IMG/VR virus record: IMGVR_UViG_3300028364_000014
Coordinates: 124,001 to 188,000 of that record
Direction: 5' to 3' (one strand)
DNA length: 64,000 bases
Below the pieces are notes generated by a model. The model was not told the origin of the DNA, did not search any database, and worked only from the letters and a program-made list of their open reading frames with translations. Positions 1,720 to 34,148 of the stretch are shown one piece after another (position 1 is the stretch's first letter; each line of letters begins with the position of its first letter). A program made the translations under genes and the position numbers.

Positions 1720-1751
1720 ATAAACACTTTGGGTTATTAGGGAGTATTAAA

Positions 1752-2897: not shown

Positions 2898-2929
2898 AAT
2901 ATAAAATAATATTTAAGGAGAGGTTAGTT

Positions 2930-4816: not shown

Positions 4817-4834
4817 CAAAGGAGAAATATTAAC

Positions 4835-6130: not shown

Positions 6131-6138
6131 AATCAGCA

Positions 6139-7296
6139 ATGTTTAAAAAAATTTTAAATTATATTAAAAAAGGACTTGACATGAATAAAAAAGATGTTTA
6201 TATTACGTACAGTAGTGCCACAAATGTAACTGGAGAAAAATTACAAGCAGCTTTAAAAATTGCAGGTGGTTTAAAAATTCCTTCAAAAAAACAAAAACTA
6301 ATTATTGGGTGGGGAGCTAAAACAGACGAAGACGTAACTTTTCCAAAAGATACTATTGTATTAAACCATCCAAACGCCATCAGGACTAACCGCAATAAAC
6401 TTGGGGCTCTCGCACTTATGCTTGCTGGGGATGTATCAATAGCCCCATTTTCACCAACTGAAACAGTAGAAACTGATATTGCTAGTGGAAAAATTACACT
6501 ACCGCTTATTGGAAGAACAAAATATCATCAAGGTGGTAAAGGGTTTTGGGTATGCCCTACACTTACACATGTTAAGGACGCTATCAAAAACAATGCTGCT
6601 TATTTTCAGGCAATGATTGAGATTAAAGACGAATTCAGGTTTCATGTTTTTGGAGATACTGTAATTTATGCTGTAAAAAAAGTTCAACGAACTCCAGAAG
6701 ATTTTGAAGTAGCATTTATAGAAGATGAGCTTGCACGTCAGAAAAAATTGTGGGAAAAGAATAATGAGGGACCATTTCAAGAGAATTTTGCAAAAGAAAT
6801 ACTACGTAGACAAGCAAAAAATGCTACGGCTGGGGGTGCTAATATGATGGTACGCTCCAATAAAATGGGGTGGAGATTCTCTAGAATTAGTAAGCTAGAT
6901 AAAGCAGTTGAAGTTGAAGCTATAAAAGCTGTAAGAGCACTAGGTCTAGATTTTGGTGCCGTTGATTGTTGTACTGATGCTAATGGAGTTCCTTTTATTA
7001 TTGAAGTAAATACTGGACCTGGGCTTGAGGGCACACCATTTGATAATTATGTAAAAGCTTTTGAAGCTTTACTAGCAGATAAACCAAAAGCTATTCCTAC
7101 CAAACCTATATCTCCAGCTGCAAACATGGCTGCTGCAAAAACTAAAATTGGAAACTCTTCTATGGGTGCTGCTAAAAAAGCACTACTTCAGCAACAGCTC
7201 GGGAGACTTTCTAGTATTCTAGAAGAGACCCCTGATGATGAAATCGACACTTTGGAACGACTGGCAAAACACGTTATATTCGGTTCCGACTCATAA
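6139..7296 (+). CDS. ATP-grasp peptide ligase (RimK/YheCD-like)
   Basis: RTKYHQGGKG, EFRFHV and LGLDFGAVD...IIEVNTGPG ATP-grasp motifs. The true start may be the ATG at 6181. Confidence 0.85.
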   Translation: MFKKILNYIKKGLDMNKKDVYITYSSATNVTGEKLQAALKIAGGLKIPSKKQKLIIGWGAKTDEDVTFPKDTIVLNHPNAIRTNRNKLGALALMLAGDVSIAPFSPTETVETDIASGKITLPLIGRTKYHQGGKGFWVCPTLTHVKDAIKNNAAYFQAMIEIKDEFRFHVFGDTVIYAVKKVQRTPEDFEVAFIEDELARQKKLWEKNNEGPFQENFAKEILRRQAKNATAGGANMMVRSNKMGWRFSRISKLDKAVEVEAIKAVRALGLDFGAVDCCTDANGVPFIIEVNTGPGLEGTPFDNYVKAFEALLADKPKAIPTKPISPAANMAAAKTKIGNSSMGAAKKALLQQQLGRLSSILEETPDDEIDTLERLAKHVIFGSDS

Positions 7297-10467: not shown

Positions 10468-11859
10468 ATGAGAACATTAGAAGCTTTATGTAAACTTAAT
10501 GATACAAAGGCTGAGGTGTATCTTGTTGGGGGCTTCGTTAGAGATTTCATAAGAAGAAAGAAAAATAAAGACCTAGATATAGTAGTACGCTATATGGCAT
10601 TGTCTCAAATTTCTGACTTTTTAAGTACACACGGTAAAGTAAAAGAATTAATAATACATCGTAATCATGGACCAAAAGCTGACCCAATTAAATTTTTGTC
10701 TTTTTTCGGAAGTGATGGTGTAGAAGCTCAAATTACAACTGTGAAGGGTTCCGGTGAAGATCGAAACCCAAATGCGACGCTAAAACAAGACGGAAAACAT
10801 AGAGATTTTACAATAAATTCAATGTATCTTCCTGTTAATAATATAACATCAAAAGCAGTTATTGATCATTTTGGTGGAAAAAACGATATTGCTGCAAAAC
10901 AAGTCTTAACCGTAGGATCAGCAAAAGCAAAATTTGTAAAATCTCCAATTCGTATATTACGAGCATTTTCCATAGCCGCTCGAACAGGCTACAACATACA
11001 TGATCATGTTAAAGTAGCCATAAGTGCAAATGTACATCTATTAGCCGGAGTGCCTATGGAGGCTATTAGGGCTGAATTTGAGGACATACTTTTAAGTGCT
11101 AAACCATCAAAATATTTTAAAATGATGCAAAAACTTGGGGTATTAAAAATGATACTTCCAGAGCTAGAAGCTACTGTAGACTGCAAACAAGACAAAAGAT
11201 ACCATAAATACAACGTATTTGAACACTTGTTATACTCATGTGATAATATCGAGCCAGATTTAATTTTACGTTTAGCAGCAATTCTACATGATATTGGAAA
11301 GCCTGCTTCACGAAATAAAATTAATAATCACGTTACCTTCTATAAACATGAGGTTTATGGGGCTAGACTAGCTCGCGTTATACTTAAACGATTAAGGTAC
11401 GACAAGGTAACTATCAACAAAGTAACTCATTTAGTAAGAATGCATATGTACCACTATACCAGAGAATTTACTGATGCAGCTGTACGTAGATTCATTGTAA
11501 ATGCAGGTATTACTAAAGATAATATAGAAAATTTGGCGGATCTTCCATTATTTAAAGTAAGAGCAGCAGAACGGCTTGGAAATGGGTTTAAGAAAACCAA
11601 AAAAACCCAAAAGCAGTATGATTATGAGGATAGAATTAAATCAGTGTTTGAATCTAGTGCTGGATTCTCTATAAATGATTTAGCTATTGACGGTAATGAC
11701 CTAATGGACACTTTTAGTATGCCTCCTGGTAGAAATATCGGAGAACTTTTAAAGTATTTACTTAGTCTTGTAATGAGTACACCGGATATTAATAATAAAA
11801 AAGATCTTCTTAGGGCATCACTTGAATTTATTATAAATGAAAAAGAAAAACATGAATAA
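10468..11859 (+). CDS. cca: CCA tRNA nucleotidyltransferase with HD domain
   Basis: YLVGGFVRD, DLDIVV, RDFTINSM and IRILRAF motifs, plus H..HDIGK and HM HD-domain residues. Confidence 0.9.
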   Translation: MRTLEALCKLNDTKAEVYLVGGFVRDFIRRKKNKDLDIVVRYMALSQISDFLSTHGKVKELIIHRNHGPKADPIKFLSFFGSDGVEAQITTVKGSGEDRNPNATLKQDGKHRDFTINSMYLPVNNITSKAVIDHFGGKNDIAAKQVLTVGSAKAKFVKSPIRILRAFSIAARTGYNIHDHVKVAISANVHLLAGVPMEAIRAEFEDILLSAKPSKYFKMMQKLGVLKMILPELEATVDCKQDKRYHKYNVFEHLLYSCDNIEPDLILRLAAILHDIGKPASRNKINNHVTFYKHEVYGARLARVILKRLRYDKVTINKVTHLVRMHMYHYTREFTDAAVRRFIVNAGITKDNIENLADLPLFKVRAAERLGNGFKKTKKTQKQYDYEDRIKSVFESSAGFSINDLAIDGNDLMDTFSMPPGRNIGELLKYLLSLVMSTPDINNKKDLLRASLEFIINEKEKHE

Positions 11860-13307: not shown

Positions 13308-14075
13308 ATGAAGAACTTATCAATGATTGGTAGACCTGGTTCTAAATCCGTAAAAAATATAGTTAAAATTACTGGAATTCCAAAATACAGGAAGACTGCT
13401 AAAGTTCTTATTAATTATGGGTTGGCTGGTAAAAAAATGGAACAGTTTATTAGAAACTTCCCATCAGCTAGAGGAAAATATTTTATCAACCAGTATGTTG
13501 GATGTTCAAAATATAAAGCGGTGAAGGAAGCTGAAAAGCAAAAAATCAAAGTTCCAAAAACCTATATGGTACTTCCAAATTTTGTAGAAAGTTCTAACTT
13601 TCTTACCAAAAGATTACATTCCCAAGGTGGAATAGGTATTGCCAAAGTAATAGGTAAGACCAAAAAAAACAATGAGTATTTTCAAGAATTTATTAGTGAT
13701 CGTAGATATGAATTACGTGTTCATGCCTTCGCATGGATTCCCCAAGAAGAATGGGTTTTACAAAAACGTTTTGGGCTACCAAATGAAATTGCTTGGAATT
13801 TTCATAATGGTGGTAGATTTCAATCTATTAAAAGCACTAATGGTTATAATTTATTTAAAAAAGCTAAAGAAATTTCACAAAAGATTCTTAAAATACGAAA
13901 AATGGCATTTGGTGCTGTAGATTTAATAGTAAATTCTTCTGGGGAGATATATTTTATTGAAATTAATTCCGCTCCTGGGTTTACTGGATTAAGTCAACCA
14001 ATTTATGTAAACGCTTTTAATAAATTAAAATCTATGGCAGAAAATGATGTTTTGAAGTTGTGCAATAAAAGGTAA
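13308..14075 (+). CDS. Second ATP-grasp ligase (RimK-like)
   Basis: KRLHSQGGIG, YFQEFI...YELRVH and AFGAVDLI...YFIEINSAPG. Confidence 0.85.
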   Translation: MKNLSMIGRPGSKSVKNIVKITGIPKYRKTAKVLINYGLAGKKMEQFIRNFPSARGKYFINQYVGCSKYKAVKEAEKQKIKVPKTYMVLPNFVESSNFLTKRLHSQGGIGIAKVIGKTKKNNEYFQEFISDRRYELRVHAFAWIPQEEWVLQKRFGLPNEIAWNFHNGGRFQSIKSTNGYNLFKKAKEISQKILKIRKMAFGAVDLIVNSSGEIYFIEINSAPGFTGLSQPIYVNAFNKLKSMAENDVLKLCNKR

Positions 14076-16612: not shown

Positions 16613-17278
16613 ATGAACAGACCAATAATTGATTATAATACAACGGATGTTAGAATAATAAAACATAACGCATTACGTGCAGCCCTTAGAGGTGATGATG
16701 CTATGATGAATTGCACTACTTACATTGATACACATGCTGGACCCGGATGCCATAACAACTGTCCAGGTTCTCCGATGATTGCAAGTGACCATTTTAATGA
16801 ATTATTTTTATATGAAAATAATCCCGAAGATTTTAATAAATTAAAAAGAAACATGAAAGCTGGTTGTATTCTTAGAGAAGCCGATGGGTTTAAGTCGTAT
16901 TGCTATTCTGATAAGAAAACGTTCGTTTTCATGGACCCTCCATTCAAATCTATTAGAGATTATTTTAAAGTAGCAAACTATTTGCAGACTGTCCCTGGGA
17001 TAGGTGCTCTTATGCTTATGTATCCTGTTAGTGCCTTTTTTCCTATTGAAGATTTTCATTGTATGTTACAAAGACAAATAGGGGGTGTAAATTTCTTAAT
17101 AAAAAAAGCAAGAGTATCTGAAACGAAATATTATTGTATGTTTTCTTCAGATGTTTCGGTAATACCGGCATGGAAAGACATCCTTGATCATTCTAGTTTA
17201 ATTGACACTTATAGTATGCAAAATCATATTGGGGATTATTTATTTAAAAAAAGGAAACAAAATCAAAGTGGATACTAA
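16613..17278 (+). CDS. RlmJ-like adenine-N6 methyltransferase
   Basis: DVRIIKH...YIDTHAGPG, FMDPPF..RDY and LMYPV parallel the RlmJ motifs DVLKH, YLDTHAGAG, IDPPYE..DY and LWYPV. Confidence 0.7.
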   Translation: MNRPIIDYNTTDVRIIKHNALRAALRGDDAMMNCTTYIDTHAGPGCHNNCPGSPMIASDHFNELFLYENNPEDFNKLKRNMKAGCILREADGFKSYCYSDKKTFVFMDPPFKSIRDYFKVANYLQTVPGIGALMLMYPVSAFFPIEDFHCMLQRQIGGVNFLIKKARVSETKYYCMFSSDVSVIPAWKDILDHSSLIDTYSMQNHIGDYLFKKRKQNQSGY

Positions 17279-19661: not shown

Positions 19662-19736
19662 GCAGAAGTAATTCAATTGGTAGAAAATTATCCACCAAGA
19701 TAATAAATGCAAGTTCAATCCTTGTCTTCTGCTCCA
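19662..19736 (+). tRNA. tRNA-Gly-like RNA with a 6-nt anticodon loop (CACCAA) and encoded CCA
   Basis: GCAGAAG/CTTCTGC acceptor, U73, CCA; TTATC-CACCAA-GATAA. Confidence 0.7.
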
Positions 19737-19866: not shown

Positions 19867-19937
19867 GCGAGTATAGTTCACTTTGGTAGAGCAATAGCCT
19901 TCCAAGCTATGTGCCAAGGTTCGACTCCTACTTCCCA
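19867..19937 (+). pseudogene. Degenerate tRNA-Gly(TCC)
   Basis: D and anticodon arms intact (ATAGC-CTTCCAA-GCTAT); the T-stem and 3' acceptor strand do not pair. Confidence 0.6.
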
Positions 19938-19981
19938 CACACGCCCCCCTAATCCAGGCAAACGACTATAAAGGAATTATT

Positions 19982-20209
19982 ATGGCAAGTTTAGAAGAAA
20001 TTGAAAATACTTTAAATCTCATACGCATGATTTGGAGAGAACAGCCTCAACTTAGATTATGCCAGTTATTAAATAATACAGCACGCCTGTATAAATGGAA
20101 AGATACGGGTCTTTTTTACATATCAGACAAAGAATTAAGAGAAGGTCTACAACAGTATCTTAAAGATATGTTAAAAATGGATCTAAAACAACGCGGCAAA
20201 AGTAATTAA
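19982..20209 (+). CDS. Hypothetical protein
   Basis: RBS; W...PQLRLCQLL...FY..D motif common in small phage proteins. Confidence 0.6.
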   Translation: MASLEEIENTLNLIRMIWREQPQLRLCQLLNNTARLYKWKDTGLFYISDKELREGLQQYLKDMLKMDLKQRGKSN

Positions 20210-20403
20210 CATGAGTATTATGTGTACTATGGGCTTTCATGATTGGAAAATTATTGAAATACCAAAATGGTTGATAAAAATTGAGAGAGTAAGTGTTGTC
20301 CCTTATATGCGTGCTTGTAAAAGACCCGGGTGTACGGCTAAACAAAAACAAAAAAGTACAGGACCGAACAAAGGTCAATGGTATAATATAGCAGAGGTTT
20401 AGA

Positions 20404-20739
20404 ATGATTGAAATAGTTTATACAGATAATGGTAAAGTAGTACCAGATGAGCAACTTGAAAAATGGAGTGAACAAGTAATAAAAGAACATAAAAATTTTG
20501 GTTACTTAAACATTGAAGTTGGTTCCTCAATTATGGTAGATATGATAAGAGTGCTTATTGTAAGAGAAAAATTGAAACCAGAAGAAGTTACTTTTTTTAA
20601 TAGAAACAAAGAGGAACCTATAAAAATAAATAGTGCTGGAAGATTATCAGATTGGCCAAGTAATTTTTGTAGTAAAGGAAATGAACTTCTTTATGAACTA
20701 ATAACAGCCTGTTCCAAAAGTAAAAAAAGAAGTATCTAA
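20404..20739 (+). CDS. Hypothetical protein
   Basis: GAGG RBS; 111 aa. Confidence 0.6.
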   Translation: MIEIVYTDNGKVVPDEQLEKWSEQVIKEHKNFGYLNIEVGSSIMVDMIRVLIVREKLKPEEVTFFNRNKEEPIKINSAGRLSDWPSNFCSKGNELLYELITACSKSKKRSI

Positions 20740-20793
20740 AAATAATTTATATTAATACAAGGATAGTGGTGCTTGAACTAAAATTAAATAACA

Positions 20794-20867
20794 CGCTGCA
20801 TGGCGAAATCTGATATCGCACTCCGTTTGGGGCGGATGGATTGCTGGTTTGAATCCAGCTACGGCGA
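20794..20867 (+). tRNA. tRNA-Pro(TGG), divergent
   Basis: Cloverleaf with loop TTTGGGG; several mismatches and T-loop TTTGAAT. Confidence 0.65.
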
Positions 20868-21122
20868 CAAGAGCTAAGAGGTATTAAAAACATGTTTACT
20901 GGAAGTGATGCAAGGTACATGGCAGAACAAAATCATAGTAGATTACAAGAAATTATTATAATGGTTGAAAAAACTGCTTTAAAGGGAGAACTTACATTAG
21001 TTATACATAATGAACCGATAGATCCTACACTAGTTAATATGTTACGAGGATTAAATTATAGAGTAACTTGTGAGGTTAATACGCATGAAAACACTATACA
21101 TAAATTAATTATCGAATGGTAA

Positions 21123-21339
21123 AATAACAGGAAGTTGGCTTAAAGGCAGCCACTTATAATGAGTGAGGCGAAGACCTACTGCTAGTTCATTTGCTTGACA
21201 GGCTTGGTATCGGTTATTAATGTTAAGGTCTGGGCAAACCATGGTGTCCAATAGCGTAGGAGATATCTCGGTAAAGTAACGAAGCACCCCAGAAATGGTA
21301 AGGCGGGTTTCCTCTTTGGCGTAGCAGCACACTATTATT
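21123..21339 (+). ncRNA. 23S rRNA H42-H44 (L11-binding domain) mimic with an insert of about 150 nt
   Basis: CAGGAAGTTGGCTTAAAGGCAGCCAC...AATGAGT and GCGTAGCAGCACACT match 23S nt ~1054-1105 as recalled; closing helix AATAACAG/CTATTATT. Confidence 0.75.
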
Positions 21340-21349
21340 TTATCATTTT

Positions 21350-21422
21350 GGAGCCATCGTCTAATGGCTAGGACGTATCCCTTTCAAGGATAAAATGTTG
21401 AGTTCAATTCTCACTGGCTTCA
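21350..21422 (+). tRNA. tRNA-Glu(TTC)
   Basis: Cloverleaf with TATCC-CTTTCAA-GGATA. Confidence 0.88.
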
Positions 21423-21435
21423 TAAATAACTATAT

Positions 21436-21506
21436 TGCGGAATAGAGTAGTGGTTACTCGTAGGACTCATATTCCTAACACGGAGGTTCGAATCCTCCTT
21501 CCGCTA
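21436..21506 (+). tRNA. tRNA-Met(CAT) with a 1:72 mismatch (initiator-like)
   Basis: TAGGA-CTCATAT-TCCTA anticodon arm; T1.T72 mismatch. Confidence 0.85.
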
Positions 21507-21628
21507 ATAGCTACTTACCAAGTAGCTCTATTAATCCTTGAGCACTGACGTTATGGTAGTCAGTTAGTAAAAAAAATCATACTCGAAAAGGTATGCACGT
21601 GTTTATATGGTTTGGAACACAAACATAT

Positions 21629-21762
21629 GAAGATTGTAGCTCAACTGGTTAGAGCGGCTGACCCAAAAATCTTTTTGCATCCACTTGTCACCCATCTATG
21701 ACCGAAGTAAAAAGTTTATCATACTTCAGCGAGTTGAGGGTTCAAATCCCTCCAATCTTCCA
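21629..21762 (+). ncRNA. tRNA scaffold with a 64-nt structured insert in the anticodon loop
   Basis: AAGATTG/CAATCTT acceptor, canonical D and T arms, and a GCTGA/TCAGC stem enclosing 21662-21725; G-1:C73. Confidence 0.75.
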
Positions 21763-22341
21763 AGTAAACCCTCTAATTTTCTAAGTAAAAAAAAATTAAA
21801 AACATTAAAGGTTCAAAACTTTTAGGCACTAAAGGAGATATTTTATGCTTTCATTTAAAGAACTAAAACAGTTGAAAATAAAAACTGATTTTTTAAATAG
21901 ACAAGTGAAGAAATTTTTTCTTTCTTTAAGTGGCAGTTGTGAATATAGAAAATTAAAACATCACGATAGTGGGGATTGGTACAAATGTACACATAAAAAT
22001 TATCACTTAGCAAAATATAGAGACATAACTCCTTGTGATGAAAAAGAATGTCCTAAATTAAATTAAAGATAATAATGCAGTCAGAACTCTACTTTTCAAC
22101 ATAGATCCCAAACTGTATATTAATAGGTATGGATTAGCAGATGATTCATATCAAAATCAAGTATCATGGTCGACTTATTTTTAATGAGTTGAAATTAAAA
22201 TTTGATGAACAACTTTATGGAGCACACCCGTATAGCTCAGCCAGGTGGGGGCCATCCAATCACAACGGGTAGTCAAAGGATAACTGGAATGGTTATCTAT
22301 AAGTAAACCCTAGCCAGTACTAAACTACTCAGTGTTGGCAC

Positions 22342-22632
22342 ATGAAAAATATAAAATTACCAGTAAATTATAATGAACTCCACTATAAAGATAGACGTAT
22401 TGTACGTGAAGAGTATATTAAATTACAAGACGGTAAATGCTTTCACTGTAGTGTCTCATTAGATAAGAAGCCCAATTTAAGTGTAAGAAAATTATCAGTA
22501 AATAAAAACCTTTTCCCAAAAGGATTCTTTGATTATCCAATACATTTACATCATAATCACGATACTGGAATGACTATAGGGGCTGTTCATTGTTATTGTA
22601 ATGCAGTATTGTGGCAGTACTACCATAAATAA
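22342..22632 (+). CDS. Endonuclease VII-like (His-Me finger) nuclease
   Basis: QDGKCFHC ... HLHHNH.TG ... VHCYCN. Confidence 0.75.
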   Translation: MKNIKLPVNYNELHYKDRRIVREEYIKLQDGKCFHCSVSLDKKPNLSVRKLSVNKNLFPKGFFDYPIHLHHNHDTGMTIGAVHCYCNAVLWQYYHK

Positions 22633-22644
22633 AGAGGACTACTT

Positions 22645-22908
22645 ATGGAAAAACTTAGAACTAAATCGACTTTCATAAAAGATAAATTTTATGTTAGATT
22701 ACTAGAAGACGATTATGTAATAAACGAAATGGCATGCAAAGATAAAGTTGATATTACTTGGTGTTGTAACTATATGCTGCGATGGTTTGATAAGTTGGAT
22801 GGTAGTTCTAAAATGGCTTCAGCATCTAGGTCTCGTTGGTATAAGAATAAATATAAACCTACTGGAAAAATTTGGCACGAGAAAGATTTAAGAAGGGAAA
22901 ATATATGA
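22645..22908 (+). CDS. Hypothetical protein
   Basis: GAGG RBS. Confidence 0.55.
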   Translation: MEKLRTKSTFIKDKFYVRLLEDDYVINEMACKDKVDITWCCNYMLRWFDKLDGSSKMASASRSRWYKNKYKPTGKIWHEKDLRRENI

Positions 22909-23236
22909 AAAAAGATGGTGGAAATATAAAAAATTGGCAGTTACATAATCTTACATACAAAGACGACTCTTTAAAACAATTAAAAGAGATGTATCCTGAA
23001 GCAGTTACTAAACCAAACCCAATGATAGTAACTGGCACTGTAGTTAATGAACCTACTGGTAGATGGAAACCTGGAAATCACTTTAGATCTTCTATGATTG
23101 TAAAGATAAATCGAAAAAATAACACTATTGAAACTTTAAATACAATTTACCATTTTGATCCTGAAACTGAAGGGCAAGACACTATACCTGACTTAGGTAA
23201 TGGGGTACTTGGTATATTTTATTAAGGAAATATTAA

Positions 23237-23587
23237 ATGAATAAAATAAAAATATGCGATAAAAAAGGATGTAACAACATCACAAGAACGCCTGATGTAA
23301 AATATCGTAGCATAGTTTGTGCTGCCACCGACTATGATTTTTTAATCAATGATAAAAAAAAACAAAATAAAATACCTTTTATTTCCGTAGGTAATAATGA
23401 ACTTAAAGATAATAAAAAATTAAAAAAAGGTAATTTAATAGATTGTCCTCACTGTCTGAAGAAACATAAAGTAGAACTAGGAAAAACATCTGATGGTGTA
23501 GAAACTGATTCCTTAATGTTCTATAAGTGCGGAAAAAATTTATATCTTTGTGGAGTAGACGGGGTGTCTCTAAGTGCATCCAGCTGA
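23237..23587 (+). CDS. Hypothetical Cys-containing protein
   Basis: RBS; CPHC and YKC...LCG. Confidence 0.55.
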   Translation: MNKIKICDKKGCNNITRTPDVKYRSIVCAATDYDFLINDKKKQNKIPFISVGNNELKDNKKLKKGNLIDCPHCLKKHKVELGKTSDGVETDSLMFYKCGKNLYLCGVDGVSLSASS

Positions 23588-23897
23588 AACATTAATTCAT
23601 TGGAGTTGCAGTGATAAAGAACATAAGCAATTATTAAAAGAATACAAACAATTTTACGATGTTATTGTAAATAATGGATTTAAAAAAGAATTAGATGTAT
23701 TAATAAGTGCTTCTTACCGTGTAGGCAGTATGGATGAGTGGGATGCTAATGAGGAAATAATATGAATTTATATGAAATTTTAAATACGCTTCATAAAGTT
23801 GAAGACCAGGGACCTGCCTCTTTAGATAAAAAAGAAAAGGATCAGTTAATATACAATATGACTGAATTCATTAAAGCAATAGTTAAAGAGGACTATA

Positions 23898-24455
23898 ATG
23901 ACTGATTTTTTTACGTCCGATTGGCATATGTTTCATTATAATATTATTAAATATGCCAATAGACCATTTAAAGATGAAAATACAATGAAAAATGAAATCA
24001 TTAAGAGACATAATGAAGTAGTAAGACCAGAAGACACTACATATGTTCTTGGTGATGTAGCAATGATTGGTAGACACGGACTGAGTAAATTAGAACCTAT
24101 ACTTAAAAAAATGAATGGTACTTTTCATCTTATTCTTGGTAATCACGATGAGGGTAAGCCATTTACTTATGAAAGGATGGGGTTTACTACAGTACATACA
24201 GCACTTCAATATGATACTAATACAATCCTAAGACATGACCCAGCGTCTGCTATTATTATGCCTGATAAGTTGTGGCTTGTAGGGCATGTGCATAATCTAT
24301 TTAAAATTTCTCTTAAACATACTATATGCTATAACGTAGGGGTCGATGTTAATAATTTCTATCCTGTAACTCTTGCACATATACATAAAGAAATTATTGA
24401 AGCTAAAAAAGATAGGGAATTATTTAATCGATTTAGAGAAAAAGGAGGCAGTTAA
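23898..24455 (+). CDS. Calcineurin-like metallophosphoesterase
   Basis: SDWH, LGD, GNHD and GHVH motifs. Confidence 0.9.
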   Translation: MTDFFTSDWHMFHYNIIKYANRPFKDENTMKNEIIKRHNEVVRPEDTTYVLGDVAMIGRHGLSKLEPILKKMNGTFHLILGNHDEGKPFTYERMGFTTVHTALQYDTNTILRHDPASAIIMPDKLWLVGHVHNLFKISLKHTICYNVGVDVNNFYPVTLAHIHKEIIEAKKDRELFNRFREKGGS

Positions 24456-25668
24456 CATTAAAACAAAATACTACGGTGATACCCCACTAGTATCAGCTGA
24501 ACTACCAAAAAATAACACCACTGAAGCTGAAGTAGAATCAGGGCTTAATATCTGTTTATACAAGCTAAAAGAAAGTAAACTACCCTACAATAAAAAATTA
24601 TTTGGTAATGTTACAGTTAATGATCTAAGAAAAGTATTAAAGACCAGTGTTGACGCAATTAGTTTTACAAAAAGTGAACTAGGTGAAGCTTGGTTTAAAT
24701 AATTATTCATAAAACAAGAAAATTATGAGGAGAGTAACTTTATGTCAAATAAAGATAGATTAGGTAAATTAACGATATGTAGGAGTTGTGGGTGGTTTGG
24801 TTATAAAATAGAATTTGAAAACAATATATGTCCAAACTGTTTTAAATACATTTGAAATGTTAAAAAAATTTACTAGTTGGGTATTTGATAGTGACGGTAG
24901 AAGAAAACGTAAGAGAGAGTATAAGTCTTATGACTTAGGGTTTGGTTGGGCAATGGCTGAACATTTAATTCACAAAAAATCTATTATGGAACTTCAAAGT
25001 TACATTGTAGAGCACACTGATAGCTCATTTGATTGGGGAGCACAAGACGCTATAGAACTTATTATTGAATCAGGACTAGAATTAGAATAAATTATAAAAG
25101 TGGGAAGCTGATTGCTTGGCGCAGCCCTGAAAATCGCACTATAAATATAATTCTAAATGCGTCATAGCCTTATGAATATAAAATATCTTATATTTATAAG
25201 GCATAAGCTAATGAACGTGTACTAATTAATTTTATAAATTATAATATAGACACTTTCACAAATACTAATAATATTGGGAGAATTAATGCAAAGAAAAGTT
25301 TGGACATTGGATAAAAGAATAGCGTTATTTAAATTTCTTAAAGATCGATTTGGACCACTTAGTGCTTGGCCTGGATCGTCTCCAGTAGAAGGGGCAACTA
25401 ATTTACTAAATTTTTGTAATCATTTTGCTGGATTAGTAAAAGCAAAATCTGGAAGAGCGGTACTTAATCAAGTTAGGTGGGCGGTTACAAGTCAACCATC
25501 CGTTAAAAATATTTCTACATTTTTTGAATGTAAAGCTGCAGCGTTGGATGCGGGATTTATTACTAGCAAAGAAATGCCTACTAAAGTTGAATGTAAGTAT
25601 TAATTAAAGATATTTAACTAACTCTTATATTATTAGGATGTTTTAAAATTAAAGGAGGTGATACCTAT

Positions 25669-25836
25669 ATGCCTGGAAAAGACGGAACTGGTCCTAACGG
25701 TAATGGACCAAAAAAAGTAAAGCAGGGTGTTCCTACACCAAAAAACAATAAGAATAAACGAGGGTCTAAAAATGATCCCGGAGCCGGAAGAGGTGGGGGA
25801 GGTGGCATCGGCGGTAGAGGTAGAGGAAATAGATAA
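25669..25836 (+). CDS. 55-aa Gly/Arg-rich DUF5320-like peptide (MPGKDGTGPNGNGP...GGRGRGNR)
   Basis: Strong AAAGGAGGTGA RBS; the MPGxDGTGP N-terminus is typical of DUF5320. Missed by the ORF track. Confidence 0.7.
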   Translation: MPGKDGTGPNGNGPKKVKQGVPTPKNNKNKRGSKNDPGAGRGGGGGIGGRGRGNR

Positions 25837-25920
25837 AAAGGAGATCTTATGCAAGTAAAGCATAAGAAATTTATAGAAGACACCCTTTAAGTTACTTAGT
25901 GTAACTAAAGGAGGTGTTTA

Positions 25921-26238
25921 ATGCAATACAAAGATATTTTTTATTTATACACTTATCATTTTACTAAGAATTGGAAAATAGTAACAACAATAAGATCCCA
26001 CCCATTTAGGTTTCGATTTGATCAAGTACCTCACACTGGTGGAAGAAAGCCGTGTATTTATGGTGGTGTTAGACACATGAAGACTACACAAGAACGTAAG
26101 TGGTCTTTAGCTCATGGTAAATACGTGAGAGGTAGAAGGAGTTTTCGTATACTTCCTAATAGTTGGGATGATTATTGGCATGCACGCCGTGAAAAAGGCT
26201 GGAAGCGATCAAAAAATAAGAAAAGACAGTGGCAGTAG
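25921..26238 (+). CDS. Hypothetical basic phage protein
   Basis: GGAGG RBS; RGRRSFRILPNSWDD. Confidence 0.6.
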   Translation: MQYKDIFYLYTYHFTKNWKIVTTIRSHPFRFRFDQVPHTGGRKPCIYGGVRHMKTTQERKWSLAHGKYVRGRRSFRILPNSWDDYWHARREKGWKRSKNKKRQWQ

Positions 26239-26308
26239 TTTAGTTAAAAGTTCCTATATTCGTCGTGAATATAGGGACATAACAATTATATTTTAGGGAG
26301 AATTAATA

Positions 26309-26590
26309 ATGTTTTTTAGAACTGAAAATGGTGAAGAAAAAAAAGTAATGTTTCGGCATAATCGCGAAGAACGTCCAGATAAGAATGGTATTTATAGAGG
26401 TCATCCAGTTAATACTGAGTGTAGTATTTTTGTTGATGATACAGTGGTAGGGCATGGCATTGCGATGTGCAACCCTGTGGACCATTTTGATAAACGAATT
26501 GGTAGAAAGAAGTCTTTTGAACGAGCACTAAGAAATGCTGATTTTAATGTTAAAGACAGAACTTTAGGTTGGGCAGAATTCTGGAAGTAA
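26309..26590 (+). CDS. Hypothetical phage protein
   Basis: GGAG RBS; AMCNPVDHFDKRIGRKKSFERAL, a motif type common in phages. Confidence 0.6.
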   Translation: MFFRTENGEEKKVMFRHNREERPDKNGIYRGHPVNTECSIFVDDTVVGHGIAMCNPVDHFDKRIGRKKSFERALRNADFNVKDRTLGWAEFWK

Positions 26591-26613
26591 CGATATATAA
26601 AATAAAATAAAAT

Positions 26614-26702
26614 TGAGAGTTGCCCGAGTGGTTGAAGGGGTTCGCCTGCTAAGCGAATGAGGTTAGAAATAGTCTCCGAGGGTTCAAATCCCTCACTCTC
26701 AG
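26614..26702 (+). tRNA. tRNA-Ser(GCT)
   Basis: Type II cloverleaf; loop CTGCTAA; G73. Confidence 0.92.
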
Positions 26703-26716
26703 ACGGGAAAATTATT

Positions 26717-27115
26717 ATGCAATGGCTGTATAAGCTATACATTAAATTTATAAATTCAAGTACTTGGCATCATTTATATTATAAACACACTAAAGAATTT
26801 AAAAAAATGATTTCTAACGTAGAAAAAAATGCATTAGAATTTAGAAAAAAATGTGAGGAACTAGAAACTTATCCATGCCAATACTGCCTTGAATTAGGTA
26901 ATAAAGTATGTATTAAAACTTGTGACTTGATTGAGCATGATAATGAGGTATTAACAGCATTAATAAATAAAAATAAATGTTGTCCTGATTGTGGAAATAA
27001 GAACTCATTATGTAAAGGACCTGAAGCAGGAGCATCACAAAATATTTATTGTACCAACTGTAATCATTGGTTTAATTTCTGTCTTGGTACTTTTACGCAT
27101 AGAATTATTAAATAA
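26717..27115 (+). CDS. Cys-rich hypothetical protein (start corrected to lie after tRNA-Ser)
   Basis: CQYC, CPDC and CTNC pairs. Confidence 0.6.
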   Translation: MQWLYKLYIKFINSSTWHHLYYKHTKEFKKMISNVEKNALEFRKKCEELETYPCQYCLELGNKVCIKTCDLIEHDNEVLTALINKNKCCPDCGNKNSLCKGPEAGASQNIYCTNCNHWFNFCLGTFTHRIIK

Positions 27116-27127
27116 GGAATTATATAT

Positions 27128-27865
27128 ATGGATACAACAGTTGATTTTACTTTTCCTGTAGTGCCTTTTTGCGAAGCACAATTAAAAGACATAAACCCTT
27201 CAGATATACTTATGAATAATATGTTTAGGGTTTGTAATGTCTATAAGGGTGGTGGAGGATATGATAAGTTTCCTGATATTGCTTTTAGACGTACTGGATG
27301 TATAACAGATAAACAATTTATAGTACAACTTAAAGGATGCCCACTTAAATGTTCTTACTGTTATGTTACTCCTGCCGGTATTAATGGGGAAGCTACATAT
27401 CATTCTTCTGACCTTTTAGTTTCTATATTTAAAACCTCTATGGAATTAAATAAAACTAAGGTATTTCACCTAATGGGCGGAGCTCCAGCAATATATATAG
27501 ATAAGTGGCACCACATCATATCAAAACTACCTAAAGGCGCTATATTTCATTCTGATATCATGCTAATTGAAAAAGCATACAATAAAGTAGACTTTAGTGC
27601 TTTAAATAAACCTAATTGTCTATACGCTGTATCAATAAAGGGAAATAATGCTGAAGAATTTTTTAAGAAAACCAGTACCGAATTAAATGAGAGTTTATTC
27701 TGGAAAAATTTTGATATTGTTGTAAATAGCGGTATAAGTTTTTATATTACATTTACTGATATTAATCCAACTGAAATATATCAAAAAATTGCCGATAGAT
27801 ACGGACTTGGTGTGTTGAAAGACTCATTTACTATTAAAAAAATAGAATATGAAGCTATAAAATAA
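27128..27865 (+). CDS. Radical SAM superfamily protein
   Basis: GCPLKCSYC (CxxxCxxC) and a HLMGGAP (GGEP-like) motif. Confidence 0.75.
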   Translation: MDTTVDFTFPVVPFCEAQLKDINPSDILMNNMFRVCNVYKGGGGYDKFPDIAFRRTGCITDKQFIVQLKGCPLKCSYCYVTPAGINGEATYHSSDLLVSIFKTSMELNKTKVFHLMGGAPAIYIDKWHHIISKLPKGAIFHSDIMLIEKAYNKVDFSALNKPNCLYAVSIKGNNAEEFFKKTSTELNESLFWKNFDIVVNSGISFYITFTDINPTEIYQKIADRYGLGVLKDSFTIKKIEYEAIK

Positions 27866-27878
27866 TAAAATTTATTGT

Positions 27879-27968
27879 GTTGGGAGTGGCGAAATTGGCT
27901 AGACGCGCTAGGTTGTGGTCCTAGTATCCGTAAAGGATGTGAGGGTTCGAATCCCTTCTCTCACCCCA
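27879..27968 (+). tRNA. tRNA-His(GTG) with a long variable arm
   Basis: CTAGG-TTGTGGT-CCTAG; G-1:C73 and CCA; ATCC-GTAAA-GGAT variable arm; Leu-type D-arm. Confidence 0.85.
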
Positions 27969-28113
27969 AAAATAATAATAATTAAATAAGGATTTAATTT
28001 ATGAAAGTAATTAAAACTATATGGAAAAAACTAAGCAGTGTTCTGTGTAAAAATGAAATTAATACAGATATTTCTGAGTGTATTCCACGAACAACAATAG
28101 TAAGAAGATAGGG

Positions 28114-28420
28114 TATGTGGGAAGTGGGCTTAGAGGCAGCCAGCTTTTAAAGAGTGAGACAAATACGTATCGCGAATCGATGAACCTATAAGTTGCCATG
28201 AATACTTATAGCGGAGACTGAAACATGGCCAGAGTAAAGAATAGTAGCTACCTTCTTACGAGGTGATGCACGGTTGTGATTTATAAGCTATTATAAAATA
28301 TCATATACTGTAAGATGCAATCCTGCTCCTGATGATGCGAACGAAATAGATATGGCAAGTTGAAAGGAACCCCGTAAATGGTAAGACCTGACATCTCTTT
28401 GGCGTAGAAGCACACCACTA
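28114..28420 (+). ncRNA. Second 23S rRNA H42-H44 mimic with an insert of about 245 nt
   Basis: GGGAAGTGGGCTTAGAGGCAGCCAGCTTTTAAAGAGT ... TCTCTTTGGCGTAGAAGCACAC. Confidence 0.75.
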
Positions 28421-28560
28421 TTTATTAAATATTTATATAAACCTGTAGTTACGAAGGGTATTAGGGAACCTAAGAAATGCCTCACTTCATAAATTGGAGA
28501 TTAATGGCTGGTATAGATCTAATATATTATAGATATTTTTAACAGCAAAGGGCTTAAATA

Positions 28561-29130
28561 ATGAATATAAATAAACTTTTGGCTTGGTTAGCGATAATTA
28601 TCCTAGGAATTTGTACTTACCTAGTTCCTGTATCAGCAAATCAAAATTGGCATTCAGAATATGTAATAAATCTTCAAGGCAATAAACCAGTTGTTATTAT
28701 TACTAATGGTAAAAATAAAATTGTGTATACACCAACTGAAGAACAAACATTTATGGTTGCTGTTACGAGAGCTATAAAACAGGGCGCTGATGCTTGTGAG
28801 TGTATGAAGATAGCCATAGATATGAATTATACCCCATATCTCGTTTTAAAGACCATATACTCAATCGGTAGCTACATAAAACTCGATCAGTTGTGCATGT
28901 GCGCCACCGAAACAGGGATAATGAAAGCTATTATTGTAAAAGCCGCTATTGATGCCACCTTACCGACAGGAGAACATAGATTTAGTAGGGATGAAATTAT
29001 TCAATCACAATGTTTAAAATTAGAAAAGGAAATTGATTATATATTTGTTGTACCAGCATTGCCCACTCTTCCACCCATAAAAATAGATATAGATAGCGAT
29101 AAATCCTTTGCTACAAAAACAACTTTTTAA
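28561..29130 (+). CDS. Exported hypothetical protein
   Basis: N-terminal signal/TM segment. Confidence 0.6.
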   Translation: MNINKLLAWLAIIILGICTYLVPVSANQNWHSEYVINLQGNKPVVIITNGKNKIVYTPTEEQTFMVAVTRAIKQGADACECMKIAIDMNYTPYLVLKTIYSIGSYIKLDQLCMCATETGIMKAIIVKAAIDATLPTGEHRFSRDEIIQSQCLKLEKEIDYIFVVPALPTLPPIKIDIDSDKSFATKTTF

Positions 29131-31158: not shown

Positions 31159-31233
31159 GCGGAAGTAATTCAATTGGTAGAAGCCTATCCTCCAAGATAG
31201 TTAATGCAAGTTCAATCCTTGCCTTCCGCTCCA
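31159..31233 (+). tRNA. tRNA-Gly-like RNA with a 6-nt anticodon loop (CTCCAA) and encoded CCA
   Basis: GCGGAAG/CTTCCGC acceptor, U73, CCA; paralog of 19662-19736. Confidence 0.75.
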
Positions 31234-31244
31234 TTAATTAATAA

Positions 31245-31330
31245 GCGTCGTTAACCCGTACATGGAAGCGGTCCAGTCTGTAAAACTGGTGGCCTAACGG
31301 TCTCGGGATGTTCGAGTCATCCACGGCGCA
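31245..31330 (+). tRNA. tRNA-Tyr(GTA)
   Basis: Type II cloverleaf; CCAGT-CTGTAAA-ACTGG. Confidence 0.9.
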
Positions 31331-31403
31331 CAATTAAGTTTCAAATTATTTTAGATAAAGTTCCACGAGATAGAAGTAAAATAAAACTTTAAAAGGAAAA
31401 ACG

Positions 31404-32624
31404 ATGAAACTATTGAAACTATATAGTCAATTCTATATAAAAAAATTTATTAATCTTTTAAATACTGAAGCCATCCCTCTTGAAATTGTGGATTTATCTG
31501 GTAAGGTATATAAAACCGCGTCAAATAGCATTAGCCATAGGTTAATTATAAAAGATCCTAGATTTTTTAAATCTTTACATTCCCCTAATGCTTTATCTTT
31601 AGGTGAAGCCTACATTAAAGAATACTTTGACATTGAAGGGGATGTTAGAACGCTATATACCATGCTTCATGATAGAATATTGAATACTGAGCAAAAGAAA
31701 AATAAACTAACCTCTTTCATAAAATCTTTTGTGGATGTAAGACAAAAGGAAAAAGAAAATATTGAGTATCACTATGACGCTCCTAGTACTTTTTATAGAA
31801 TTTTTTTAGGGCGAACAATGGGCTATACGTGTGGTTATTATCCTGATCAAACCACCACAATGAGTGAAGCACAAGAAAGAAAAATGGATATCATCTGTAA
31901 AAAATTAAAATTGAAAAAAGGTGAGCATCTTCTAGATGTTGGGTGTGGTTGGGGTAATTTTGCAATTTATGCTGCTGAACACTATGGAGTTACTGTCACA
32001 GGTATTACTTTAAGTGAAGAACAAAAAATATATGCAGACAAATTAGTAGAGGCAAGTCAACTCAGTGTTTCAATTAAAATTATGAACTACCGTGACCTTC
32101 CGTTAAATTATTATGATAAAATATCATGTATTGGGATGTCAGAGCATGTAGGTCAAAAACATATGCAGGAATTTTTTAATACTATATATAAAACACTTAA
32201 ACAAGGCGGATTATTTCTACATCATAGTATCACAACTAATACTAAAAGACAAAAAGGATTAGAAAATTCTTTTTTAAATAAATACATGTACCCTGGAGGG
32301 GAGTTAATGTTTGAGCACGATCTTGTTAAGTGTGCTGAAATAGCTAACTTTGAGTTACTAAATGCTGAGAACTTTAGACCTCATTATGTTACAACGTTGA
32401 ATGATTGGATAGATCGAATAGAGGATAGAAAGTCTGATATATTGAATGTTATTTCCGAACAAGTGTATAGAATATACCATACTTTTTTTATAGGGTCAGC
32501 AGCCTCATTCAAATTAAAAGAAATATCCTTATTTCAAAATCTTTTTTATAAGACTAGTGTATATGACACTGACAATTATTTTAATAGTATCTGTGACTAC
32601 TCCCCCTCTAAGCCGAAGCTATAG
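31404..32624 (+). CDS. cfa: Cyclopropane-fatty-acyl-phospholipid synthase (C-terminus replaced by IS end)
   Basis: IEYHYD, MGYTCGYY, LLDVGCGWG, GITLSEEQ, GMSEHVG, KYMYPGG and HYVTTL..W. Confidence 0.9.
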   Translation: MKLLKLYSQFYIKKFINLLNTEAIPLEIVDLSGKVYKTASNSISHRLIIKDPRFFKSLHSPNALSLGEAYIKEYFDIEGDVRTLYTMLHDRILNTEQKKNKLTSFIKSFVDVRQKEKENIEYHYDAPSTFYRIFLGRTMGYTCGYYPDQTTTMSEAQERKMDIICKKLKLKKGEHLLDVGCGWGNFAIYAAEHYGVTVTGITLSEEQKIYADKLVEASQLSVSIKIMNYRDLPLNYYDKISCIGMSEHVGQKHMQEFFNTIYKTLKQGGLFLHHSITTNTKRQKGLENSFLNKYMYPGGELMFEHDLVKCAEIANFELLNAENFRPHYVTTLNDWIDRIEDRKSDILNVISEQVYRIYHTFFIGSAASFKLKEISLFQNLFYKTSVYDTDNYFNSICDYSPSKPKL

Positions 32625-33874
32625 AGGAGGCTTCTTGGGGGATTAACCCCTGAGACTGTAGCCCCAGTCTCAAAATATTTATGGCAGCATTATGGTCTCT
32701 ATTTAGTACTAAATTGCAGTGAGGACACCTGTGAATTCTGGTTGAAAGGGTCTTTTTTACGACCCGCCCGCAAGCTGGATTTGAGCACATTTGGGATGTA
32801 TATGCTGGATTTACTGGTATTAATTGTTTGCCTAAAATTGATGCTTTATATTGTAGAAAAAGTATGAACTTATTCCAGCTTGCGTCAGCGATAGATTTAT
32901 TTAAACCAGATTTTACCGACGCACCATTAGGTAAATATCCATCAGAATTAGGATCTTTTATTGGAGTAGCTCGCTTAACCATATTCTTTACGTCAAGTTT
33001 TTCATAAACTATAACATTGGAGATAGACAAGAGCTTGTTGGCTGTTTTATGGAGAAAATCATTACGTTGGCACTTTATTCTGTAATGACATTTCCTAATT
33101 GCTTTTAACAGCCTGTAGTATTTCTTTGTTCTTTTAGTAGTTTTTGATAACTTTCTTTGTAGATTAGCGAGACTTTTTTCATTAGCTCTAAAACTTTTTG
33201 GTGATTTTACAGAATTTCCATCTGAATCATAATAGAAATCATTTAAACCTAAATCTATTCCTAAAAAGGTAGTTGGATTCTGCTTAATCTCTACTTTAAG
33301 ATGATTCTCAAAGGAGAAGCAGACAAACCATTTACCAGCTTCTTTGGATATAGTTAAGGTTTTAATTGTTCCATTTTCTGGAATTTCTCTGTGGTATTTA
33401 ATCTTAATATTACCTATTTTGGAGATTTTTAGTATACCATCGACAGGACGTTCTTTAAACTGTGGGTAAGTAATGCTGCTCCAGTCTTTAAACTTTTTAA
33501 ACTTTGGAAAACCCGCCTTAGCTTCCCCAGATTTAATTCTTCTGAAGAAAGATTTATAGGCTGTGTCTAAACGTTTTAGTGTATTTTGAAGCACCTGTGA
33601 ATGTACTGAACCAAACCACGGACGTTCTTTCTTTAGAAAAGTAAGTTCATTGCTTTGTTCAAAAAGACTGATTGAAATACTGTGGTTTTCATAAAGCCAG
33701 ATTCTGTCCTCAAGAGCCCAGTTATACAAATACCTACACATGGAGAACTGATTCTCCAGGCGTGTGGTTTGAGCTTTAGTAGGATAAATTCTGTATTTAT
33801 GTGTAAGTAGCATTTCTCTCCATAAGTAAAATAATTAGTTTCTAATACATAATATATCACAGCATGTGATGTAT
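32593..33874 (-). mobile_element. IS200/IS605-family tnpB-only element (IS1341-like)
   Basis: The - strand right end has a subterminal hairpin ending in TCAC at 32593; left end adjoins TTGAC; rejoining the flanks restores an in-frame cfa C-terminus. No tnpA is present in the window. Confidence 0.8.
32608..33813 (-). CDS. tnpB: RNA-guided endonuclease TnpB
   Basis: HKYRIYPT HTH, GIDLG (RuvC-I), VYEKL (RuvC-II), TSQMCS..C zinc finger and RDHNAAINI (RuvC-III). Confidence 0.95.
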   Translation of the reverse strand: MLLTHKYRIYPTKAQTTRLENQFSMCRYLYNWALEDRIWLYENHSISISLFEQSNELTFLKKERPWFGSVHSQVLQNTLKRLDTAYKSFFRRIKSGEAKAGFPKFKKFKDWSSITYPQFKERPVDGILKISKIGNIKIKYHREIPENGTIKTLTISKEAGKWFVCFSFENHLKVEIKQNPTTFLGIDLGLNDFYYDSDGNSVKSPKSFRANEKSLANLQRKLSKTTKRTKKYYRLLKAIRKCHYRIKCQRNDFLHKTANKLLSISNVIVYEKLDVKNMVKRATPIKDPNSDGYLPNGASVKSGLNKSIADASWNKFILFLQYKASILGKQLIPVNPAYTSQMCSNPACGRVVKKTLSTRIHRCPHCNLVLNRDHNAAINILRLGLQSQGLIPQEASSIASA

Positions 33875-33986: not shown

Positions 33987-34068
33987 GCCGGAATGATGGA
34001 ATGAAGACATACAGGACTTAAAATCCTGTGACCGTAAGGTCGTGGGGGTTCGTATCCCCCTTCCGGCA
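33987..34068 (+). tRNA. tRNA-Leu(TAA)
   Basis: Type II cloverleaf; CAGGA-CTTAAAA-TCCTG; A73. Confidence 0.9.
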
Positions 34069-34148
34069 CATATAAATTTAGTTTAAAGAGCTTTTAACTT
34101 TTCTATAAATTGATGTTAAAGTGTGACAATAGTGTAAAGTAACAACAT

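Follow-up and report, generated by a model that had tools for sequence, protein, structure and literature searches.

The mRNA leaders for the ribosomal proteins (r-proteins) L10, L1, S8, S15 and L20 each carry an extra-ribosomal copy of an r-protein site in ribosomal RNA (rRNA). These leaders are bacterial cis-regulators located upstream of r-protein operons, and the copied portion is usually a local motif. In phages, the species 1 and 2 RNAs of T4 (rnaC and rnaD) are stable RNAs produced by small genes within the phage tRNA cluster, with which they are co-processed, and their function is unexplained. Phage PhiTE encodes pseudo-ToxI, an RNA that imitates a host RNA (PMC3475682). Within 23S rRNA, the L11-binding domain or GTPase-associated centre (GAC) forms a high-affinity complex with L11 when it is isolated as an RNA of nucleotides 1050-1109 (PMC1802607).

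Here we describe a phage RNA whose conserved core corresponds to 23S rRNA nucleotides 1051-1108, comprising distal H42, H43 and H44. Two copies reside in the window, a term used here for the whole 64,000-nucleotide stretch of viral DNA that was analysed. A preliminary description made from the sequence of the window had proposed that the first copy is a free-standing phage replica of the L11-binding/GTPase-associated domain, and this proposal is borne out by covariation across a family of such RNAs, by invariant nucleotides at tertiary-contact positions and by the existence of the second copy. The observation of an rRNA GAC-like RNA is thus confirmed, far beyond chance.

Two GAC-like elements and their family

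Copy 1 extends from outer helix to outer helix over positions 21121-21341 (+). It is matched at 21123-21343 (92.4 bits, E 1e-21) by a covariance model, R1, that was built from 33 short-arm phage members and had neither the window sequences nor rRNA in its training set. The 5ʹ strand of the outer helix P1 (21121-21130) represents distal H42 (23S 1051-1055) plus an extension, and it pairs with 21332-21341 to give 10 bp with one mismatch, in agreement with the H42-like closing helix that had been claimed. Next comes the H43 equivalent at 21132-21155, with a lower stem AAG/CUU, an upper stem GGC/GCC and the loop UUAAAGGCA; U1060 corresponds to 21135 and A1067 to 21142, and position 1078 is deleted. 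The junction strand (21156-21164, equivalent to 1082-1090) contributes A21156:U21160 as the 1082:1086 pair, followed by G1087 (21161), A1088 (21162) and then G-U. Beyond an extra arm, which is considered below, the sequence reads as a UUUG linker, the H44 hairpin and A-C-A (1101-1103) at 21315-21331. The hairpin itself, GC-GUAGCA-GC, occupies 21319-21328 and places the A1095 equivalent at 21323. Both sequence strings quoted in the preliminary description are present in the window where it had located them (GGAAGUUGGCUUAAAGGCAGCCAC-UUAUAAUGAGU at 21130-21164 and GC-GUAGCA-GC-ACACU at 21319-21333). Its quotation of E. coli 23S rRNA likewise agrees with the fetched rrlH sequence (our reference L106, in which 23S position n is position n+59).

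Copy 2, at 28113-28426 (+), has a longer arm, is alignable with copy 1 and is matched by R1 at 84.0 bits (E 1e-19). Its P1 core is formed by 28117-28120 and 28415-28418, its A1067 and A1095 equivalents are 28132 and 28406, and its arm helix pairs GAGA (28156-28159) with UCUC (28394-28397). A 20-nt H43 motif, allowing up to 3 mismatches, occurs twice in the window and in none of 100 shuffled versions. By single-sequence folding, the minimum free energy of copy 1 is no better than that of shuffled sequences (z = +1.88), and stability must therefore derive from tertiary contacts or protein. A candidate third copy at 25469-25629 (+) was not counted. It scores only 11.3 bits with R1 (E 0.12), lacks H44 and lies inside an ORF (25274-25603); an H43-like hairpin, GGUGGGCGGUUACAAGUCAACCAUCC, is followed there by GUUAAAA, and the match could represent a decayed copy or chance.

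At least 99 distinct members make up the family; their sources are phage contigs of IMG/VR, MAG contigs of phage-like character, and cultured phages of jumbo or large size. Searches of IMG/VR with two exact patterns recovered 81 loci with a 16-nt H43 motif and 29 loci with a 19-nt H44 motif, among which loci L071 and L054 are the matches to window copies 1 and 2. Both motifs were found in order, 90-307 nt apart, in 88 IMG/VR cases, 74 of them unique, and R1 identified 98 elements in 105 IMG/VR loci. A single scan of a collection of genomes from 185,579 species with a family-specific 3ʹ motif yielded 29 further loci, at least 23 of which are clear members. These 29 loci are on MAG contigs assigned to many phyla, and since they carry phage-type tRNA, tmRNA and suppressor-tRNA arrays, the MAG members most likely represent phage or prophage DNA that was included during binning. 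Four of the genome-collection loci (L111, L114, L127 and L137) have tmRNA genes together with suppressor-type tRNAs with CUA and UUA anticodons, which suggests that stop-codon-recoding large phages were binned into bacterial MAGs.

A blastn comparison with GenBank phages revealed about 20 cultured carriers. These include Cronobacter phage GAP32, Pectobacterium phage CBB, Serratia phage BF, Yersinia phage fHe-Yen9-04 and several Erwinia jumbo phages, as well as Xanthomonas phages XacN1, XbC2 and XaC1, Pseudomonas phages pf16, Milchi, Astolliot and UNO-G1W1, and Aeromonas phage 4_4572. A search with R1 recovered the complete element in GAP32, pf16 and XacN1, and a megablast of window positions 20000-29000 against INPHARED gave no match. 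In the cultured-phage records, the element resides in unannotated gaps or beneath ‘hypothetical protein’ calls. Coding sequences of the latter kind overlie it in PQ464597 (phage Milchi) at 79029-79188, in PP551948 at 70500-70674 and in PQ464595 at 96608-96646, and each is probably a mis-annotated RNA gene.

Members range from 97 to 350 nt in length, with the shortest (in L114) carrying G at 1067, and from 0.34 to 0.68 in GC content, and they come from many environments and many MAG phyla. Several copies can occur in one genome. For example, locus L092 holds tandem members on its minus strand at 3843-4085 and 4096-4335, only 10 nt apart.

Core fold and departures from rRNA

The similarity between the family and the ribosomal domain can be detected from either side. 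R1 matches E. coli 23S rRNA at nt 1048-1115 (54.5 bits, E 3e-12), and the Rfam LSU_rRNA_bacteria model matches member L045 over model positions 1083-1154 at 38.8 bits (E 8e-9), below its gathering score of 50. Member L099 is identical to E. coli at 34 of 34 positions from 1055 to 1088.

Base pairing is conserved to a degree that shuffled sequences do not approach. Across the 99 distinct members (alignment A4), 94.6% of cells are paired, compared with 68.4% after shuffling; all 500 shuffles fell short of the observed figure, and controls in which the partner strand was slid gave 34-59%. A structure-blind MAFFT alignment (A2) produced similar figures, with 93.9% paired as opposed to 69% for shuffled and 32-49% for slid sequences. 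Compensatory changes are present in 20 of the 21 pairs of the GAC structure and arm basal helix in the same 99 members, including all seven modelled P1 pairs. H43, with its two 3-bp stems and the U1060/N1061 bulge, is retained in the family; pairing reaches 98-99% of cells in its stems, where compensatory changes also occur, as illustrated by pair 1058:1080 (GC 41, UA 29, AU 17). The 1082:1086 pair also covaries (UA 39, CG 28, AU 16). The helix that closes the domain (1051-1055/1104-1108) is present, as is G1087:C1102, which is GC in 96 of 99 members and AU in two.

The conservation of each half of the core was counted only in members found via the motif of the other half (n = 40 for the H43 side, n = 54 for the H44 side). 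On the H43 side, U1060, G1071, A1085, G1087 and A1088 are each retained in 40 of 40 members. Within the 9-nt H43 loop, UUAGAAGCA, G1071 is accompanied by U1066 and C1072 (39/40 each), A1073 (37/40) and A1067 (34/40). On the H44 side, G1091, C1092, G1093, U1094, A1098, G1099 and C1100 are present in 54 of 54. The H44 loop, GUAAUA in the E. coli hexaloop, keeps A1095 in 46 of 54 members, a purine at 1096 and any base at 1097. We take the invariant nucleotides to be the builders of the H43-H44 tertiary core, with contacts assigned from the literature. The tertiary signature as read from sequence (U1060-A1088, 1082:1086, 1072/(1092:1099) and A1084/A1085) appears to be intact in the family. One member (L092:4096-4335) combines U1072 with U1092:A1099 and has G at 1069-1070; the U1072/(U1092:A1099) combination is reportedly the alternative, isosteric form of the base triple that Conn, Gutell and Draper described in 1998. 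In rRNA, A1084 and A1085 form A-minor triples at the H42 junction, A1085 with G1055=C1104 (PMC1919483). Position 1061, where a U-to-A change stabilises the GAC fold (PMC1802607), varies freely in the family. These sequence patterns strongly support the prediction that the family shares the compact GAC tertiary fold.

The nucleotides of the ligand-facing surface are somewhat less constant. A1067 and A1095 are the solvent-exposed adenines that face thiostrepton, EF-G and the tRNA elbow. The preliminary description reported both as kept, which holds for copy 1 but not for the family as a whole, where each is retained in only about 85% of members. This level of retention suggests that the cleft is important in most, but not all, lineages.

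All members depart from rRNA at the same place. An extra helix is inserted between the G1087-A1088-G-U strand and G1091 of the G1091:C1100 pair, which converts the three-way junction of rRNA to a four-way junction. Accordingly, no member has the rRNA three-way junction, the continuous 1087-1092 strand or the 1090:1101 pair. In copy 1, the arm occupies 21165-21314, has no rRNA counterpart, and encloses a branched 142-nt interior within a basal helix of GAGG (21165-21168) and CCUC (21311-21314). The insert of about 150 nt that had been reported is therefore branched and closed as claimed, but it lies outside the H44 stem proper to which it had been assigned. In the family, four of four basal-helix pairs covary, and the interior of about 20 to 240 nt is not alignable family-wide. 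Position 1101 is A in 54 of 54 members (U in E. coli), opposite G or A, and is preceded by a UUU linker. The outer helix stops at 6-10 bp, and the H42 kink-turn and the L10 site are absent.

One sub-family, to which both window copies belong, shares a module within the arm that reads GCGAAG ... AAGUR ... GCACCCC-hairpin-GGUAAGGC. In copy 1, this module lies at 21274-21304 as AAGUA..GCACCCC-(A GAAA U)-GGUAAGGC. Among 13 aligned members (alignment A3), AGU, ACCCC and GGUAAG are invariant, and the closing pair of the small 3-bp hairpin covaries. We considered whether the arm mimics another region of 23S rRNA, but a blastn-short comparison with E. coli 23S rRNA gave only random 7-10-mers outside the GAC. 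Mimicry of the sarcin-ricin loop was also rejected, as inspection of the sub-family module revealed no AGUA-C-GAGA-G-GA arrangement. Separately, seven loci (L022, L044, L059, L063, L065, L068 and L077) carry an extra hairpin directly after A1077 in the H43 3ʹ strand, such as GACGAAAGUC... in L068, and this position is a second permitted expansion site.

The tRNA-array context

The strongest contextual clue to the role of the element is its association with tRNA genes, which the preliminary description missed although its identification of a structural mimic was correct. In 97 loci with 99 elements, ARAGORN placed 764 of 764 tRNA or tmRNA genes on the strand of the element and none on the opposite strand. 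A tRNA lies within 30 nt of at least one side of 34 of the 99 elements, and on both sides of seven; the gaps in these 34 elements measure 0-25 nt and resemble ordinary inter-tRNA spacers. The association is not strict, given that the nearest tRNA is over 1 kb away for 38 of the 99 elements and that many arrays have no element. When ORFs within 2.5 kb were clustered, no conserved protein neighbour emerged; the largest cluster drew its members from 6 near-identical loci out of 108. Because the tRNAs share one strand and no protein neighbour is shared, the element behaves like a further member of the tRNA array rather than like the leader of a gene.

Both window copies fall within a same-strand run of 16-18 tRNA genes that extends over 15.3-34.2 kb. 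The stop codon of a 76-aa ORF marks the start of copy 1, and copy 2 also follows a small ORF. A gene for tRNA-Glu (21349-21423, +; ARAGORN and Rfam) starts 7 nt after the end of P1 in copy 1, such that RNase P cleavage of this tRNA would set the 3ʹ side of the copy 1 RNA. Copy 2 has tRNA-His (27880-27968, +; ARAGORN and Rfam) 144 nt upstream. Neither ARAGORN nor the Rfam tRNA model calls the elements themselves (21121-21341 and 28113-28426) as tRNA or tmRNA, and a scan for promoter and terminator signals near the element found only background levels. The window is a standard-code jumbo-phage segment; its ORFs are dense under table 11 and give no sign of stop-codon recoding.

Several other features of this region were recorded. 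The Rfam tRNA model matches 131 nt at 21630-21760 (+, 50.7 bits), where ARAGORN makes no call. The match corresponds to a tRNA in which about 60 nt are inserted downstream of the anticodon region; a short intron of such length is unusual for a phage tRNA. At 31159-31233 (+), ARAGORN reports an unusual tRNA whose ‘anticodon’ is 2 nt long, and Rfam alone finds tRNA-like genes at 19662-19733 and 19867-19939 (+; 43.3 and 34.7 bits). These three may be degenerate or non-canonical. A TnpB/OrfB_IS605 protein with a Cas12f-like TNB domain is encoded on the opposite strand amid the tRNA region (32608-33813, -), flanked by tRNA-Tyr (31245-31331) and tRNA-Leu (33987-34069). Also in the tRNA region, the ORF at 16613-17278 (+) matches RlmJ, a 23S rRNA methyltransferase, only marginally in Pfam (27.1 bits, cut-off 27); its product may methylate phage RNAs. 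The segments at 865-7296 and 13308-14075 (+) encode a cluster of glutamine amidotransferase-like proteins, a phiEco32-type COOH-NH2 ligase and another ATP-grasp protein, with a RimK-like ‘ribosomal protein S6 glutaminyl transferase’ at 6139-7296 (+). This cluster is a peptide- or protein-modification module adjoining a CCA-adding enzyme (10468-11859). The window additionally encodes an RNase T-like exonuclease and an RlaP RNA-repair protein, and in phage XacN1 a 2ʹ-5ʹ RNA ligase gene adjoins the element. No r-protein was found among the 40 window ORFs scanned.

Proposed function and relation to known systems

The isolated 58-60-nt rRNA domain alone binds uL11 tightly, and for this reason the phage RNA most likely binds host uL11; the broad distribution of the family similarly favours a universal partner such as uL11. 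We propose, at what we judge to be an even chance, that the element specifies a stable tRNA-array RNA with the GAC fold that captures host uL11 and acts as an off-ribosome uL11/GAC decoy. The RNA would be transcribed as part of the phage tRNA array and freed by RNase P and by 3ʹ-end processing of the flanking tRNAs. Its core is predicted to fold like 23S 1051-1108, with H43 and H44 docking via U1060-A1088, G1071, C1072 and the A-minor contacts of A1084 and A1085, and a fourth, variable helix would project from the junction. On capturing host uL11, the RNA would become an off-ribosome copy of the uL11/GAC stalk-base platform.

This platform might divert newly made uL11, yielding uL11-poor ribosomes that are unresponsive to RelA. 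Other candidate targets are toxins or antibiotics directed at the GAC, and factors or tRNA elbows that dock there. Attack on the GAC has a precedent in Tre23, which ADP-ribosylates H44 nt 1095-1098 (PMC8661411). The version of the proposal in which factors are decoyed is tempered by the incomplete retention of A1067 and A1095 and by the loss of the H42 kink-turn and L10 site, and the surfaces for uL11 or factors could be changed or obstructed by the arm, the UUUG linker and the A1101 peculiar to the family. Most cellular uL11 is already bound to ribosomes, and titration would thus require high levels of the RNA. That such a trans-acting replica of a ribosomal centre, as a uL11/GAC particle, disarms GAC-directed toxins or immunity or the uL11-dependent RelA stringent response is possible but tentative, its chances falling a little short of even. 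Overall, we regard this functional interpretation as plausible. The preliminary description had likewise inferred a decoy, one that would titrate L11, translation GTPases, RelA or defence ribotoxins, and its reading as a whole is partly supported.

The naked RNA might instead serve as a target mimic for GAC-directed toxins, such as Tre23-type ADP-ribosyltransferases or unknown defence nucleases, independently of uL11. The positions that Tre23 modifies are included in the replica, the neighbourhood is rich in tRNA- and RNA-repair functions (the XacN1 ligase, and RlaP and the CCA-adding enzyme in the window), and multiple copies per genome occur. There is also an analogy to phage tRNA arrays and pseudo-ToxI in countering RNA-directed defences, the latter providing a precedent for RNA mimicry against abortive infection (PMC3475682). 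However, 1096 and 1097 vary freely, A1095 and A1067 are each missing from some 15% of members, and the very broad host range implies a universal rather than a strain-specific opponent. We also know of no anti-phage defence that targets the GAC, and we consider uL11-independent toxin mimicry unlikely. A binding role of another kind would have the A1067/H43 surface hold tRNA elbows or translational GTPases off the ribosome. On the ribosome, this surface is in contact with domain V of EF-G and the elbow of the A/T-tRNA; Munishkin and Wool are said to have reported in 1997 that EF-G binds isolated oligonucleotides of the thiostrepton region, and the element is co-located with tRNAs. The contacts are nevertheless weak and dependent on the context of the ribosome, and 6 of 40 members carry another nucleotide in place of A1067, which together make a tRNA- or factor-directed RNA very unlikely.

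The genomic setting could also be read without any role in trans, by viewing the element as a very stable, compact spacer that acts as a barrier to exonucleases or directs RNase P/E/Z cleavage of the tRNA polycistron. The tRNA-like slots and spacers and the variable arm would fit a processing or stability module of this type. It would leave unexplained why rRNA loop sequences are retained down to single nucleotides, with the solvent-exposed A1067 and A1095 among them at 85%, in hosts of 34-68% GC, and the arrays without an element and the elements remote from any tRNA also argue against it, so we rate it as quite improbable. Control of an adjacent gene in cis through uL11 would resemble the r-protein leaders, which work by mimicry of rRNA sites, and both window copies do follow a small ORF; yet no protein family is conserved upstream or downstream, the usual neighbours are tRNAs and no Rfam leader model matches, which makes this arrangement improbable in the extreme. 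Finally, genuine host 23S contamination does exist in some INPHARED ‘phage’ records, and one could ask whether the element is non-functional debris, either a piece of host 23S rDNA, captured or chimeric, or an artefact of assembly. The arm and A1101, both foreign to rRNA, occur in all members, compensatory changes affect nearly every pair, and the element is found in finished genomes of cultured phages, leaving this explanation with a negligible chance.

Viruses are partly defined by the absence of rRNA. In this case, a functional domain of rRNA has been copied, remodelled and strongly selected in many large phages, some of them cultured. If correct, the interpretation offered here would establish the first viral mimic of an rRNA domain, and with it a novel class of RNA for host takeover or counter-defence. 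Should the RNA bind uL11 or GAC ligands, the ribosomal stalk base would emerge as a new site of conflict between phage and host. Such binding would also suggest that defences aimed at the GAC, or signalling through uL11 and RelA, are important during infection, and the phage translation toolkit would include a third RNA class beside tRNA and tmRNA. There are practical consequences as well, in that ‘hypothetical protein’ mis-annotations can be corrected and a textbook RNA tertiary fold gains a natural variant with a four-way junction.

Within the reach of the tools used, the RNA represents a class not described before, namely a free-standing viral copy of an rRNA domain, and no Rfam family is dedicated to it. 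Full-text literature searches, including jumbo-phage reviews, recovered no description of such an RNA, as the preliminary description had supposed, and papers on phage-encoded r-proteins make no mention of one. An Rfam scan of the whole window gave no match to either element at the gathering threshold, and at E<=10 no family matched copy 1 in a scan of 20900-21600. At E<=1, members L045 and L114 returned only the sub-threshold LSU match to L045 and matches to flanking tRNAs and tmRNA. GOLLD and ROOL, which had been named as families to be excluded, are thereby set aside together with the other families of Rfam 15. Like the phage RNA, GOLLD, ROOL, HEARO and OLE are structured ncRNAs, and GOLLD and ROOL often reside near phage tRNAs, but their architecture is unrelated.

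The T4 species 1 and 2 RNAs resemble the phage RNA in being encoded in a phage tRNA cluster, and they were considered as relatives. They proved unrelated in sequence and structure: with filters off, the best R1 match within T4 positions 68000-75000 reached 7.6 bits and lay off rnaC and rnaD. The r-protein leaders share with the phage RNA the principle of copying an rRNA site, but the phage RNA reproduces a near-complete domain, is viral, is unlinked to r-protein genes and matches no Rfam model for such leaders. Pseudo-ToxI mimics an antitoxin repeat and concerns one toxin and one host, whereas the GAC-like RNA mimics a universal ribosomal domain in many lineages. Compared with the 23S GAC itself (E. 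coli nt 1051-1108), the helices, loop sequences and tertiary-contact nucleotides are the same and each RNA is detectable from the other with covariance models, although neither window copy matches an LSU model at E<=10 and both are flanked by phage tRNAs and ORFs. The phage RNA dispenses with lower H42 and its kink-turn and with the remainder of the rRNA, and it differs from the ribosomal domain by being free-standing, by residing in tRNA arrays, and by its four-way junction, A1101 and UUUG linker.
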